Positions 46,517 to 63,810 of a stretch of 64,000 nucleotides of DNA are shown here, piece after piece (position 1 is the stretch's first letter; every line of letters begins with the position of its first letter). The translations under genes and the position numbers were made by a program. The notes below the pieces were generated by a model. The model was not told where the DNA came from, did no database searches, and saw nothing but the letters and a program-made list of their open reading frames with translations. The stretch is from Oikopleura dioica (taxonomy: Eukaryota > Animalia > Chordata). The stretch spans positions 10,168,001 to 10,232,000 of the forward strand of contig OU015566.1 of NCBI GenBank assembly GCA_907165135.1. Reading direction: 5' to 3'.

Positions 46517-47959
46517 ATGATATTTTTCTTGTTTTTCTGAGATTCGTAGACTCAAATCAATCAGAAATTGTGTTCAAAGTTTTCGATGAGATTTCAAAAT
46601 TAAATTGGTTTGAAGCGAGAGATTTTTGCGTTGATTATGGAGCTGTACTCGCTACTTTTGATGATGCTCTTCAGTATCAAGCGGTAAAAGGATGAGATAC
46701 GATTAACGACATTAGTAGGAAATCACTAATAATTGAGCTTTTTTCTAGCTTAGTAGGGTGGGACTATAAACGTAGAATGAAGCTGGGGATTTTTGACTAT
46801 TGATAGTCGGGGTGAACAACCCTGAGGGCATTTAGATACCTCGAAGTCCCAAAATCTGCCAACTGAAATTGTAATTTTGAAGCCCAACTAAGCTTTTAGA
46901 GGCTGCCCACCAGTCTAGAGTAGCCCAGGCTCTGGCGGTTTGTGTGAGCCAAGAAAGTAGTGAGGGGATGATCTGGGGAGCTAGGAGCTCGAAGTTTGGG
47001 ATCTCGACCATTAGGTACTTTTTCACAAAAAGTACACGATGTGTATCAAAAATGCCTCCCAAAGACTTTCTGAGGATGTTTCTTCATTAAAAATGTTCTG
47101 AAATCATTTGAGGTCATCTGAGGTCAGATCGGGTCACTTATCACTTTTTTCAATTTATCACAATTTTTGACCTCGAATGACCTCAAATGACCCCAAATGA
47201 TTTCAGATACATTTTTTAATGAAGAAACATCCTTCTTTGGGAGGCATTTTGATCACATCGTGTACTTTTCTACACAATTGGTCGAGATCCCAAACTTCAA
47301 GAGCTCCTAGCTCCCCAGATGCATCTCACTTTTCTTGAGCTCAAATGAGCCAAATCTAGACTAGTGGGCAGCCTAAAAGCTTAGTTAGGGCTTCAAAATT
47401 ACAATTTCGAAGTTGGCCAGATTTTGGGACGTCGGAGGTATCTAAATGCCCTCAGGGTACGAGATCACCCCGACTATCAATAGTCAAAATGATCCCCAGC
47501 TTCTGGGGATTCTAAAACTGTATTATAGTCCCACCCTACTAAGCTAGAAAAAGCTCAATTATTAGTGATTTCCTAGACATTAGGTTTTTAGAAGCGAAGT
47601 ATTTTCGAAAATTATAATGTGTGGCTTGGGATTTATGACAAAAATGAAGGAAGCAACGCGAATCGTCTTTGGAGGGCCTCAGATGACACTGATCCTGGGT
47701 ATTTCAACTGGGGTGCAGGCCAACCATCAAGTCCTTATAATCAAGTTTGTGTGAGCCACGAGCCTGGTGAGACAATGATCATGCAGGATCGACCGTGTGG
47801 AGACCATGCTACTTTTTAAAAAAGTTTCCTCTTTGCCGTTTTCTTGGACATTATCCAGCTTATGATACTATTCAAGATTATGTGCCGGATCATTATCCTT
47901 ACACTTCTTTGTTTTCTAGCGAAGATTATTCTAGGACAGGGATGATAATGATTTTCTAG
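46517..47959 (+). CDS. secreted C-type lectin 2 (intron expanded by a MITE; apparent 1-nt deletions near 46525 and 47815)
   Basis: LNWFEARDFCVDYGAVLATFD|..VWLGIYD..FNWGAGQP..CVSH..MQDRPC..FPLC. The tail HYPAY..EDYSRTGM is homologous to lectin 1 HYPKY..DDYSRKGM. Confidence 0.75.
46716..47575. mobile_element. 860-bp foldback MITE, hAT-like (8-bp TSD GACATTAG)
   Basis: Termini TAGGAAATCACTAATAATTGAGC / GCTCAATTATTAGTGATTTCCTA. The arms are imperfect inverted repeats over nearly the whole length. GACATTAG occurs at 46708-46715 and 47576-47583; there is no transposase ORF. Confidence 0.92.
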
Positions 47960-59520: not shown

Positions 59521-62159
59521 ATGGACAATTCGAAATCGGGCCCGGCGCAGAGGACTTCTTCGGATAGAAGATCCGCAAGCTCCAGTTCTACTCGGAATGA
59601 ACAACATCAACAAAATCAATTCAAAGGGAAGGTTTTCTACTTCGACAATGAGTGCCGAAGAGATCAACGCTTCGACAGTAAGATTTTCATAAAGATATTG
59701 TATCAAATATTCTTAGAACTGGTGAAACAAGTTCAATACGCTGGAGCTTCAGTCGAGCTGTTCCACACGAAAAAGATCACGCACTACATTTCCATCAGCG
59801 GGCGAAAGCCGCAAGCTCAACCTCCTGGCCCTTCAAGAAGATCAGGAGGGACAGCCAGACCACTGTCGAGAAAAGATCTAATGCTTGCAGCTGTGAAAGG
59901 AAGTCAAACTACCAGCAGGGTGGCTATTTTGGATTTGGGGGTTAGTTGGAATTGGATTGGATCCAATCCAATAAAGTTTGGATGGAATTTGGATGGCCAG
60001 GGTACCGGATTTTGTTGGGGAAAATTGGGCAATTGGGGGAAATTGGGGAAATTGGATCCAATAAAAAATATATCTCTAAACTATGCAAAGTAGGGTCATT
60101 TTCATGATAAAAATGAACAATCTCAGATAAAAAAATCATTGTTTTGGCTCTGTTGATCCTCCTTTCGGATAAAAACTTACTGTTTCATTTCTTTTCAAAG
60201 TACTAGAAGCCTTGGAAAAATTGGAAACCCAATTGGATCCAATTGGAATTGGGGATAATTGGGGAATTGGGTAAAATTGGATTGGATTGGATTTTGGATG
60301 GATAGCTTCGACTCAAAATTTATTGGATGGAAATTGGATGGCGAGACCCCGAAATTTTGTCCAAAATAGCCACCCTGACTACCAGCCCGCCAACCAGTTC
60401 AATAGAAGAAAATCGAGGAGTGCGCTATTACGCCTTTGACAGTTTACTGAGACTCGTGGCGAAGCAAGTCAGGGTAGAAAAAAGTCGAAGAGCGATGAGA
60501 CGGAGCAACGATGCAAACAAGTCGTTGGACTCTCCCGTCAAATCGCCAAAAGTCGCAAAACCAAAGAAGCCAACAACAGCGTATCCTCAGACAAGCAGGC
60601 GATCACTCTTCATCGAAACGAAGAGTCCCGAGAAGAAGACCAAAAAGATATACCTAAGAGACAACTTCACTAAAATCACCGATGTTTCTGAGCGATTCCG
60701 TCCAGTCTACAAAGATCAAATGACGGAGCAAATCGTTTCACTAGAACGAGTGGCCTACAATAAGTGTCCTTTTGTCGGTTTCTTGACTGACGAAGAACGA
60801 AAAGAAAAACGCGATTCGATGAACCTCCAAAAACAACAAAAGTATGAGCAAAAAGAGGGAACGAGCACATCTGCCAAGACAACCAGCGCCAACGCCACAA
60901 ATGCAAAAAGTGATGCGTCGAAAACGCTCGGAACAATGTGGAAGAACGGCGGAACTTGTGAGGTCTGCCAATACTTCAGATATGAAGATCCTGAAGAGCA
61001 CTTTGAATCGCAGACGCACAAGAAAAACGTCAAAAACTACGAGGAGCGCTTCAAGATTATTGACAACAAGAGTTTCAAACTTCAGAGCGGCTTGACAAAA
61101 CAACAAGAACAGAGTTTGTCGAAAATGGAGCGCCGTATCGCTATTATTAGCCATCGGAACAAGAAATATGCTGTTCGTAACGAATCGAGTTCGACTTTGG
61201 CCGAATTAGAAAGGATGAAGTCACCTATTCTTGCGGAAGAGACGCCTTTTACGGATAAGTCGAGCCAAAAGCTTCGACAAAAGAATCCCTCTTCTGACCA
61301 AAATGCCAGTGGAACTAACAAGTCGTCCGACAAAGCAGATGAGAAAGAAGTGAGTGCAGTTTTGTCGCCGGTGATTAAGGAAGTCGAAGAAGAAAATCAC
61401 GAAAATAAGAAAGTGCAAGAAGTTGTCCCGAAAATGGCTGTAGAAAATTATAACTACAACGAAGGGTCTTCTCAGAAGATTAAATTAGAGGAAAGTCAAG
61501 CGATCGAAAATGAGGAAGAAGTCGAAGAAAAGCATGTTGAAATTCCTGTAGAAGATATTGGTGAGCGGGTAGTCGCCGATCGCCAGATTCATACGGACAG
61601 TCAGGAAAGAGAGGATGAAGAAGAAGATAGTGATACTCAAACAACTTCAGATTCTTTGACCGAAGACGAAGATCCTATGATGATGGACGCGACCGAAGCT
61701 CTGAATGCGTTAAAAGATGAAGAAGCGACAGATGATAGCTGGGAAATCCCAAGTCGTATGAGCGAAGTATCAGCTGCCCAAGACAAGAGCACTCACTCAC
61801 AAAAGGCGATCCTTTGCAAACAGAAGACCATACAGCTTTATAATTTTGAAGACTCATCTGATGAAGAAGATGGTCACGTGCTTCTGAAGAAGAGCGCTCG
61901 AAAGAAAGCGACCGACAAGAGCTTCAATCTTGATACGACAAATGAAGAAGATGAAGACAATAAGACTACCTCCGTCAACCTTCCTCGTGAAAAGCCTCGA
62001 ATCATCCATCCAAAGAGGAAGCGAGGCGACGATTTCGCCCATCCAAATGACAGAGTTTGCCCGCCGAGTCCTGATAGTCGATCTCCAGCTAGGAAAAAAC
62101 CTGATGTGAATAATCGTTTTGATGGTTTTAACAGGCATGTGTTAAACAAATTTATTTGA
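59521..62159 (+). CDS. DBF4: DBF4 (DDK regulatory subunit), exon interrupted by a MITE; probably extends further 3'
   Basis: Motif N FKGKVFYFD..GASVELFHTKKITHYIS; SRKDLML; motif M FTKITDVSERFRPVY..KCPF; motif C zinc finger CEVCQYFRYEDPEEHFESQTH. Confidence 0.85.
59916..60377. mobile_element. 462-bp hAT-like MITE (18-bp TIR CAGGGTGGCTATTTTGGA, 8-bp TSD ACTACCAG) inside DBF4 coding sequence
   Basis: Perfect TIRs at 59916-59933 and 60360-60377; ACTACCAG at 59908-59915 and 60378-60385. Removing the element plus one TSD restores CAA ACT ACC AGC CCG CCA in frame. Confidence 0.93.
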
Positions 62160-62216
62160 CTTCGTCACTTGTAGATTTTTGTCTTTGTGGATATTTTTGC
62201 GTAACACTAATAACAG

Positions 62217-63810
62217 AACTAAATTGTCCATTGCTGATGAACATAATGAGAAGAATGCGCCCGAGTATGTGATTACTGATTCGCTCAAAGAAGCTTCCAG
62301 CCAAGAGCAAATGGATGTAGAAATAGCTCAATCTACAGAAAAGAGAGAAGAGGCTGCGGATGACCAAGAAAACGACGAAGAAGATACCGTTGAGCCACCA
62401 ACTGCTGTCGAGCCAGAAGCTGCGGAGCCTTCTACAAGGACGAGACACTCAAGTGGAGAGGTGGAGGAGCTCTATTACCGAAGCTCTGGTTGGGATAGAT
62501 TGCAAGAAGATGACTTCAATTGCTCTGACGAGAATAGGAACAGCTACAAAAATTTCAACTTGTACAAGTCATTTTTAAATAAAATATATAACCGTTAACC
62601 CATTGTTATTTGCACACTTTTTGAGCTTTAAAAAAGTTCCAAATCAGCACAACCTGACACTCGGGACCAAAGAGTGACCACAAAAATTGAGAAAGGCTGG
62701 ACTGATGTTTATTTCGATGACGACAGGGACAGTTAGAAGTTTTCTTTGCTACTTGAAGCACTACAGTTAATCTCATTAATTCAATAGTTCAAGGTGCAGC
62801 GACTGATTATTTCGCGTTAATAAAGCTTAAATCTCAATCTTCTAACCGCGGTCTCAGCAATACGAAAATGAGTTGCAGCGCGCTTGACAATGAAAACTTC
62901 GTTGAAACACTGCCGGATCCACACCATCGGCCTCGTCGCGCTCCTTTCCTAGTTTCACCGCCAAAAGCATCGGAACGAGGATTTACACCTCCGCCTCAGG
63001 AGGACGATAGAGTAAACGAAACCTTGCGAACAGTTGAGGATGATGCTAGCTTTGAGATTTCGCTCAACCACACAGCGCATCACGGTTCGATCAATCTGGA
63101 AAATGACGAGGAGTCGGAGGAACCTTGGAACGATCCTCACACTTTTCCGCCGAAAAGATTTGCTCAAATGGACGTTGCGCCCGAAACTCGCATTCAAATG
63201 ATCAACGAAGAAAATGAAAAGTTCGATCGTCTGCGGAAAGATTATAGCCCGCGGACTAGATACTATTCTTCTGGCTACGATGCCATGCGAACGACTGAAG
63301 TATTCGAACAACGGTTAGTACTTTTACTTGTGCTTACTGTAATTATGCATGCATCTGGGGTGGCTTCTTAGTTTCTTCCTTCCAACTGTCAATTAAACAA
63401 AAGTACCCACCCTAGGCATAATTACAAGAGATAATTATTCATGATTAAAATTTAATCATTTTGTTCATCTCAGAGAGAAGGAGGGGAAGGCCAGACCTGC
63501 GTGGCCTTTCAGAAGGACATCATCAGTGATTGCTGCTAACCGCACCAGCGCCTGCCTTTATCAGCAAAAGTAAATAAATAAACAGTTAAACCAAGAATTT
63601 GCATGCGCAAATTATCACGCTTATCCATCCCATTTAATTTCAATCCATTTTTCATGAAAAAGGTTAAACAATTATTTCTAGGAGCTCTTCTCCTGAGCCG
63701 AACGATTTCGAAGAAAATGCACAGAGCTCTTGGGGCCATTCTATGGACAAAAATGGCGTCCACACTCTTGAGCAGCGCTCTGAACTCGGAATCTCAGGTA
63801 CATTTGGCGA
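62217..63810 (+). CDS. probable further acidic, disordered exons (DBF4 3' extension or separate gene)
   Basis: A GC-AG intron at 62135-62216 would join ..DGFN-R-TKLSIADE in frame. Further open acidic segments lie at 62868-63312 and near 63680-63808. Exon structure is unresolved. Confidence 0.4.

Follow-up and report, generated by a model that had tools for sequence, protein, structure and literature searches.

When a transposon lands in a coding exon and carries candidate splice signals at its ends, has an intron been born or has a gene been broken? The question is raised by a locus of the larvacean Oikopleura dioica, in a 64-kb window (the whole stretch of DNA analyzed, positions 10,168,001 to 10,232,000 of contig OU015566.1, assembly GCA_907165135.1), where a 462-bp element at window positions 59916-60377 interrupts the second coding exon of a plausible homologue of DBF4. 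The preliminary description of this site had proposed that intron birth was caught in progress. One part of the proposal stood, namely that a young transposon lies in a coding exon and that filled and empty alleles exist, but its other part, the configuration of the element as an intron, found no support, as frames were restored at the chance rate and the splice sites were weak. In our view the chances are about even that haplotype collapse preserved a rare allele here, one that may be heterozygous and is disruptive or hypomorphic.

The following features define the insertion (none has a strand assigned):

59908..59915, unstranded: left target-site duplication, ACTACCAG, a direct repeat found as a single copy at the empty site of the metagenome contigs L001 and L022
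59916..60377, unstranded: miniature inverted-repeat transposable element (MITE) of 462 bp, recognized by its inverted repeats, duplication, sequencing depth and no open reading frame (ORF) above 65 aa
59916..59933, unstranded: left inverted repeat, CAGGGTGGCTATTTTGGA, holding the proposed GG donor (59919) and GT donor (59920)
60360..60377, unstranded: right inverted repeat, the perfect complement of the left arm
60378..60385, unstranded: right target-site duplication, ACTACCAG, whose final AG is the acceptor of proposed splice 1 (score 2.4 on the weight matrix described below)

The preliminary description had all of these coordinates right. The two 18-bp terminal inverted repeats are complementary at 18/18 positions and the 8-bp duplication is perfect on both sides of the element; because C is the next base on both sides of the duplication, the direct repeat is effectively 9 nt long. 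The 18-mer occurs in the window only at its two element sites, even with up to 3 mismatches allowed, and a relaxed scan of the window detected no second copy. In shuffled sequence 0.03 matches to the 18-mer were expected, and two matches were reached in 0 of 100 shuffles.

Is the interrupted exon the usual state of this gene? The filled allele is that of the O. dioica OKI2018_I69 chr1 reference (Okinawa), and exact look-ups of both ORFs specific to this allele revealed no filled allele outside the reference; the public protein P0002 is likewise absent from the contig index. The empty state was the sole state among four other sources. In a species-labelled DNA run diverged by 1-2% (X25), one contig covered 59401-59907 and continued at 60378, skipping 470 nt, with a depth of 115 at the empty junction that matched the flank depth of 110-123; the joint was ambiguous over 9 bases, as the 9-nt direct repeat predicts. 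This contig is genomic and not spliced RNA, because the 39-nt intron of the gene and 5' intergenic DNA are kept in it. Across the site, the metagenome contigs L001 (a Tara scaffold) and L022, assembled from separate samples, were contiguous with 98.3-98.9% identity on both sides, each with exactly one copy of ACTACCAG and a single 721-aa ORF. The site was also uninterrupted in an 86-87%-identical lineage (contig L023), where it reads AGTACCAG^CCCACC (^ marks the insertion or splice point here and below); only the first 330 bases of this contig were used. Its remaining part (330-554) is GC-rich and unrelated after about position 330, probably owing to chimeric assembly. A protein search across the junction for scar variants returned just empty-type fragments (P0006) and one fragment ending at the site (P0007). 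Altogether, these results show that the insertion is a presence/absence polymorphism and that the uninterrupted exon is the ancestral state. The preliminary description had suggested looking for both alleles in different individuals; the empty one was found in X25, L001, L022 and L023, and the filled one in the reference only.

The history of the reference assembly bears on how a rare allele could have entered it. The sequenced animal was a single male with a heterozygosity of ~3.6%, and the haploid assembly was obtained by merging a diploid draft of 99 Mb (PMC8008620). Owing to this merging, a heterozygous insertion had a roughly even chance of entering the reference, and it is because so heterozygous an animal was collapsed to a haploid sequence that we regard the allele as rare and possibly heterozygous.

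The element is a young, non-autonomous MITE of the hAT type, a class assigned on the basis of its 8-bp duplication, the CAGGG start of its inverted repeat (CAGGGTGGC) and its small size. The start consensus of hAT terminal inverted repeats is a YARNG-type motif. In maize, the Ac/Ds inverted repeat reads C/TAGGGATGAAA and is likewise accompanied by an 8-bp duplication (PMC3260210). The longest ORF of the element encodes 65 aa and was without a homologue in an ORF-based protein search, hence no transposase ORF is present; an Rfam search of the element matched nothing. Its interior is rich in short repeats of the AATTGG/TTGGGGAAA kind.

In the DNA run X25 the summed contig depth over the element reached 8,000-37,000 versus ~115 in the flanks (100-300x), which puts the MITE family at something like 10^2 copies or more, summed depth being a rough proxy of copy number. 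The word shares of DNA runs were also tried as an allele test and were rejected as non-discriminating: the share was already 0.68 in X25, which carries the empty allele, because other MITE copies supply the words. Contigs of X25 included internally deleted copies of the MITE with a joint 59996->60355 and 11-12 other letters between, so that mini-derivatives of ~115 nt circulate. A poly(A)-selected marine metatranscriptome (X1) contained a 351-nt contig of a different, ~7% diverged copy, equivalent to window positions 60063-60377, that extends beyond the right inverted repeat, where an unrelated flank, TTCTGGCT..., follows. In X1, therefore, one or more MITE copies are present unremoved, be it in RNA or in carry-over DNA of the library. 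When metagenomes were scanned for the 18-nt inverted repeat, 20 loci with a single match each came up, consistent with chance in unrelated contigs.

What does the insertion do to the gene? The host gene is arranged as follows:

59521..59677, + strand: exon 1 of the DBF4 homologue, in the ORF from ATG 59521, with the same layout as the 721-aa ORF of the metagenome contigs (P0001/P0003)
59678..59716, + strand: predicted 39-nt GT-AG intron, GTAAGA...TTCTTAG, in frame and stop-free, with the local intron pattern and retained in the DNA contigs L001, L022 and X25
59717..59915, + strand: upstream part of the interrupted exon, holding together with exon 1 the BRCT-like motif N region (~59608-59802)
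60091..60093, + strand: stop codon reached by the upstream frame when the element stays in, from the ORF reading
60386..62159, + strand: downstream part of the interrupted exon up to TGA 62157-62159, with a zf-DBF (motif C) match at ~60945-61064

The upstream frame runs from ATG 59521 into the element and ends where the preliminary description had placed its stop, at TAG 60091-60093, 176 nt inside the element, with a product of 190 aa. Downstream, a frame without stops extends from 60306 to TGA 62157-62159, and an in-frame ATG at 60327 opens a 610-aa ORF in it. Cutting out 470 nt (the element and one copy of the duplication) restores a single ORF, ...AAVKGSQTTS^PPTSSIEENRG..., the product of which has 710 aa after the 39-nt intron is also removed.

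The assignment to DBF4 made in the preliminary description was supported by language-model features, for which the top two matches were DBF4-named clusters (0.91, 192-199 of 256 features) and the best ten named matches all belonged to DBF4's family or clan, and by the domain order, BRCT followed by zf-DBF. The Pfam matches, on the other hand, fell below the cut-offs: zf-DBF was matched over model positions 2-39 of 45 with E=0.001-0.003 and 18-19 bits versus a cut-off of 24.8 bits, and BRCT at residues 30-94 with E=0.08-0.3. The sequence support for a DBF4 homologue is therefore weak but consistent. HMMER searches detected no relatives of the protein in PDB and just three Oikopleura-like fragments in a representative library of 1.8 billion proteins; because the relatives are limited to such fragments, the protein must be evolving very fast. 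We infer that DBF4 is essential and single-copy in O. dioica.

The public OKI2018_I69 proteins g2730.t1/g2730.t2 (P0004/P0002) match 60495-62144 and further exons of the window with 100% identity. Both start at Met 60495-60497, 3' of the element, and both are fused to downstream ORFs. The fusion in these models is made by an 82-nt GC-AG intron (62135-62216) that bypasses the DBF4 stop at 62157-62159, and a 99-nt GA-AG intron (62538-62636) follows further on; on inspection, the terminal inverted repeats of the two introns amounted to no more than 7-8 A/T bases. Either an error of annotation or read-through within an operon may account for the fusion.

Could the spliceosome remove the element? 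Two frame-restoring splices had been put forward in the preliminary description and the arithmetic of both is correct. Splice 1 (59919..60385, GG-AG) removes 467 nt and leaves 3 nt, that is one Ser, with CAG^ on the exon side of the donor and CAG^ at the acceptor. Splice 2 (59920..60305, GT-AG) removes 386 nt and leaves 84 nt (28 codons). Restoration of the frame is what chance provides: the frame was restored without a stop in 41/125 GN-AG pairs (33%) formed by donors at 59890-59959 and acceptors at 60300-60399, a share of one-third being the chance expectation. When exactly 470 nt are excised, the ten possible registers have the ends AC-TG, CT-GA, TA-AC, AC-CT, CC-TA, CA-AC, AG-CC, GC-CA, CA-AG and AG-GC; since 0/10 are of the GN-AG type, spliceosomal GN-AG removal must leave a scar. 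The AG-AC and AG-AT ends of the Fritillaria type were likewise found in 0/10 of these registers. A donor placed three bases inside the repeat and an acceptor at the end of the 8-bp duplication always add 3 nt, in any codon phase, which in general terms speaks for the proposed intron.

Candidate splice signals within the element, apart from those in its terminal repeats and duplications, were the following:

60304..60305, + strand: AG of the splice 2 acceptor, GGATAG^, score 2.3, with a purine-rich tract upstream
59941..59946, + strand: GTTAGT, the best GT donor of the left arm, score 3.8, among nearby acceptors in frame with 60305 alone (+105 nt)
60176..60206, + strand: internal 3'-splice-like region with CTTAC, a T-rich tract and AG at 60200 and 60206, AG 60206 being the best acceptor inside the element (4.0)

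The scores were derived from a weight matrix of 21 hand-filtered short local GT-AG introns, used instead of naive ORF-junction intron discovery, which was too noisy without annotation; the set was partly seeded on GT[AG]AG and the donor scores are biased to that pattern. Local introns scored 6.5-11.1 for donors and 1.8-12.4 for acceptors. On this scale the GT donor at 59920 (GTGGCT) reached 0.9 and the acceptors at 60385 and 60305 reached 2.4 and 2.3, respectively; the GG site at 59919 was below the listing threshold of the matrix, which was trained on canonical introns. GTTAG donors are used by two annotated introns of the same public gene model. Use of the stronger internal acceptor at 60206 would be non-productive, because an in-frame stop (60303-60305) lies downstream. 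The matrix would also score the GA-AG intron 62538-62636 poorly and says little on the non-canonical class; it may underrate the GG-AG option, as it was trained on canonical introns while non-GT introns are tolerated in this host. In the predicted RNA fold the inverted repeats pair as an 18-bp perfect stem that buries both proposed donors. The fold of the whole element was not more stable than those of shuffles (z=-1.7), the terminal stem alone being meaningful.

The same exon point was inspected in a diverged Oikopleura lineage represented by contig L024 (ENA ERZ27251157 k141_1017449), with 52% protein identity over the N-terminal region. The alignment is gap-free through ...LSRKDLMLAAVKG and five codons on the contig reads AG^GTAAGATTC (L024:690-722). 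A canonical-looking donor follows the AG of the duplication there, in phase 2, and coincides to the nucleotide with the homologous position of the insertion; the contig ends 22 nt past this candidate donor. The donor may be due to chance at a protosplice-like AG^G site or may belong to an older intron gained at the same target. Further upstream (L024:450-505), an apparent GC-AG intron AAAG^GCAAGT...AAATAG^ stands where the window has the 39-nt GT-AG intron 59678-59716.

A second transposon of the window, a foldback element of 860 bp (46716-47575), has almost fully self-complementary arms with the ends TAGGAAATCAC... and is flanked by an 8-bp duplication, GACATTAG (46708-46715 and 47576-47583). 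It seemingly occupies intronic sequence of a + strand gene that is C-type-lectin-like, and the acceptor TTTTTAG^ at 47591 follows 8 nt further downstream. Hence both duplications of the window, ACTACCAG and GACATTAG, do end in AG, as the preliminary description had stated when it took such ends to favor splicing. Because an AG-ending duplication also accompanies an insertion outside an exon, the AG ends point to target preference and not to selection for splicing.

RNA data were compared with the site. In two species-labelled raw RNA-seq runs, presumably from another cryptic lineage, no reads matched the gene at >=90% identity and a spurious 30-nt match at 61919-61949 was the only one. The metatranscriptome X1 gave two small exon contigs of the gene, neither of which reached the junction. 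An mRNA of the empty allele, when aligned to the filled reference, mimics a perfect 470-nt intron, so splicing can be told only from junctions that bear a scar or from reads of homozygous carriers. The public gene models were built with RNA-seq hints from culture (PMC8008620), and although they contain GC-AG and GA-AG introns they still did not bridge the element. The start of these models after the element is weak evidence against a well-supported GG-AG junction, because the RNA set was small and reads of the empty allele would align with non-GN-AG ends that a predictor ignores.

The course of events that we favor, as stated at the outset with about an even chance, would be as follows. In the Okinawa lineage, a young hAT-type MITE jumped into coding exon 2 of the DBF4 homologue. 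The resulting allele would be rare and might be heterozygous, and the assembler would have retained it by chance when the haplotypes were collapsed. Its transcript would most likely be truncated at TAG 60091-60093 or mis-spliced via the stronger internal sites of the element, and the allele would be null or hypomorphic and not a working intron. A rare heterozygous null, which the preliminary description had named as an outcome against its own proposal, is compatible with all findings.

Several points weigh against this disruptive allele. The RNA data are silent either way, the X1 contigs missing the junction and the species-labelled runs being off the gene. The host tolerates non-GT introns, which make up ~11% of the introns in OKI2018_I69 (PMC8008620), and one of the GA-AG type is annotated in the same gene model. 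The heterozygosity of the insertion in the reference animal is deduced from the assembly history. Finally, the diverged lineage L024 has its canonical-looking donor at the homologous nucleotide.

Some of these points are at the same time the strength of the best-surviving alternative, a nascent GG-AG (or other) intron that gives an in-frame mRNA by joining CAG^GGTGGC (59919) to AG 60385, with a 3-nt CAG scar and an extra Ser. As a corollary, insertions at AG-ending targets would leave the frame intact and, as introns, could become fixed by drift. The splice arithmetic holds, and CAG^ stands on the exon side of the donor and at the acceptor. Besides the ~11% of non-GT introns, GA-AG introns are numerous in O. 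dioica (PMC7072748), and the annotated one lies 2 kb downstream in the same model. Precedents are known as well: exonic maize Ds1 elements are spliced (PMC5432752, citing Wessler 1991; PMC3260210), and MITE-derived introns occur in Fritillaria and Micromonas (PMC11282704). At the homologous nucleotide L024 reads AG^GTAAGA. Against such an intron stands the fact that no junction read was present among the RNA data compared with the site and that the filled allele was not seen outside the reference. The frame is restored at no more than the chance rate; donor and acceptor are weak on the local matrix, with a stronger internal acceptor in competition, and the predicted fold hides the donor within its perfect 18-bp stem. 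The RNA-hinted models leave the element unbridged although they admit GA-AG introns, and the second AG-ending duplication marks an intronic insertion, so the AG ends may reflect the choice of target and not survival via splicing. On balance a working nascent intron is possible and rather unlikely.

A wider form of the same idea, which we hold to be somewhat more doubtful, would make the CAGGG... hAT MITEs of O. dioica act as animal introners, each combining a GG donor with the AG of its duplication and leaving a constant 3-nt scar. The DBF4 insertion would then be a newborn segregating intron and the L024 donor an older product of the same process.

Less probable still, and in our opinion improbable, is a tolerated split of the gene, in which the element is retained, motif N is dispensable and the part with motifs M and C is translated separately from Met 60327 or 60495-60497. 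This could proceed by re-initiation or by spliced-leader trans-splicing onto the unpaired acceptor at 60305 or 60385. Spliced-leader trans-splicing and operons are in wide use in O. dioica, and motif N of yeast Dbf4 is not known to be required for viability. Both public models start exactly at Met 60495-60497, and the in-frame ATG 60327 opens the 610-aa ORF; the former start, however, is the one that a predictor falls back on when it has no way to join the upstream exon, and the filled allele is rare. An assembly artefact, in which the element was misplaced by mis-assembly or polishing of a repeat, is hardly credible: the family is of high copy number and the filled state was seen in the reference only, but a perfect local duplication and perfect inverted repeats, with one copy at the empty site, are the signature of true transposition.

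How far does this case resemble known systems? The closest is maize Ds1 in Adh1-Fm335 and the wx alleles, also a non-autonomous hAT element of ~400 bp with an 8-bp duplication and a repeat that starts with C/TAGGG (PMC3260210). Exonic Ds1 is spliced via sites within 35 bp of its ends, and it shares with the DBF4 insertion the exonic position and candidate splice sites of both kinds no more than a few tens of bases from the ends (PMC5432752). The differences are that Ds1 splicing was shown on RNA, with GT donors and several mostly imperfect isoforms, whereas the DBF4 insertion is known from DNA alone; its near-scarless in-frame option needs a GG donor, and its host is an animal with very short introns.

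The introners of Micromonas, Aureococcus and dinoflagellates and the MITE introns of Fritillaria borealis are likewise short transposons with inverted repeats and a target-site duplication, where element and duplication could each supply one of the two splice sites (PMC11282704). F. borealis is, like O. dioica, a larvacean host with relaxed splice-site rules; inverted repeats and duplications are found on its non-canonical introns, which presumably stem from MITEs (PMC11282704). Introner families, unlike the DBF4 MITE, of which the window has one copy, are defined by many demonstrably spliced copies, and the introns of Fritillaria are mostly AG-AC or AG-AT, ends that the exact-excision registers in DBF4 do not have. 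The literature searched held no description of MITE-built introns in O. dioica; in the introner papers the species figures only for near-identical introns, noted early (PMC3609843). With ordinary segregating exonic insertions the locus shares perfect repeats and duplication, an empty allele elsewhere, a premature stop 176 nt in and a truncated public model; it differs from them in the permissive spliceosome and in the CAG^G and CAG^ ends, which make leaky rescue more plausible here than in most animals. The phenomenon is thus known in kind, from Ds1 splicing, introners and the MITE introns of Fritillaria, of which the locus would be at most a further case, and the value of the locus is that of a testable polymorphic case in a culturable animal.

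If carriers make no in-frame mRNA, the insertion is an ordinary deleterious one, a chance survivor in a haploid-collapsed reference, and it serves chiefly as an annotation warning, the public DBF4 model being truncated and fused to downstream genes. If carriers do make in-frame DBF4 mRNA, the locus would show an animal intron arising in nature, a rare thing to see, with pre- and post-insertion alleles both available. The efficiency of splicing, its fitness cost and the role of the permissive spliceosome would then be directly measurable in a species with a 4-day generation time, and the many non-GT introns of O. dioica would be linked to transposon activity, as has been proposed for Fritillaria.

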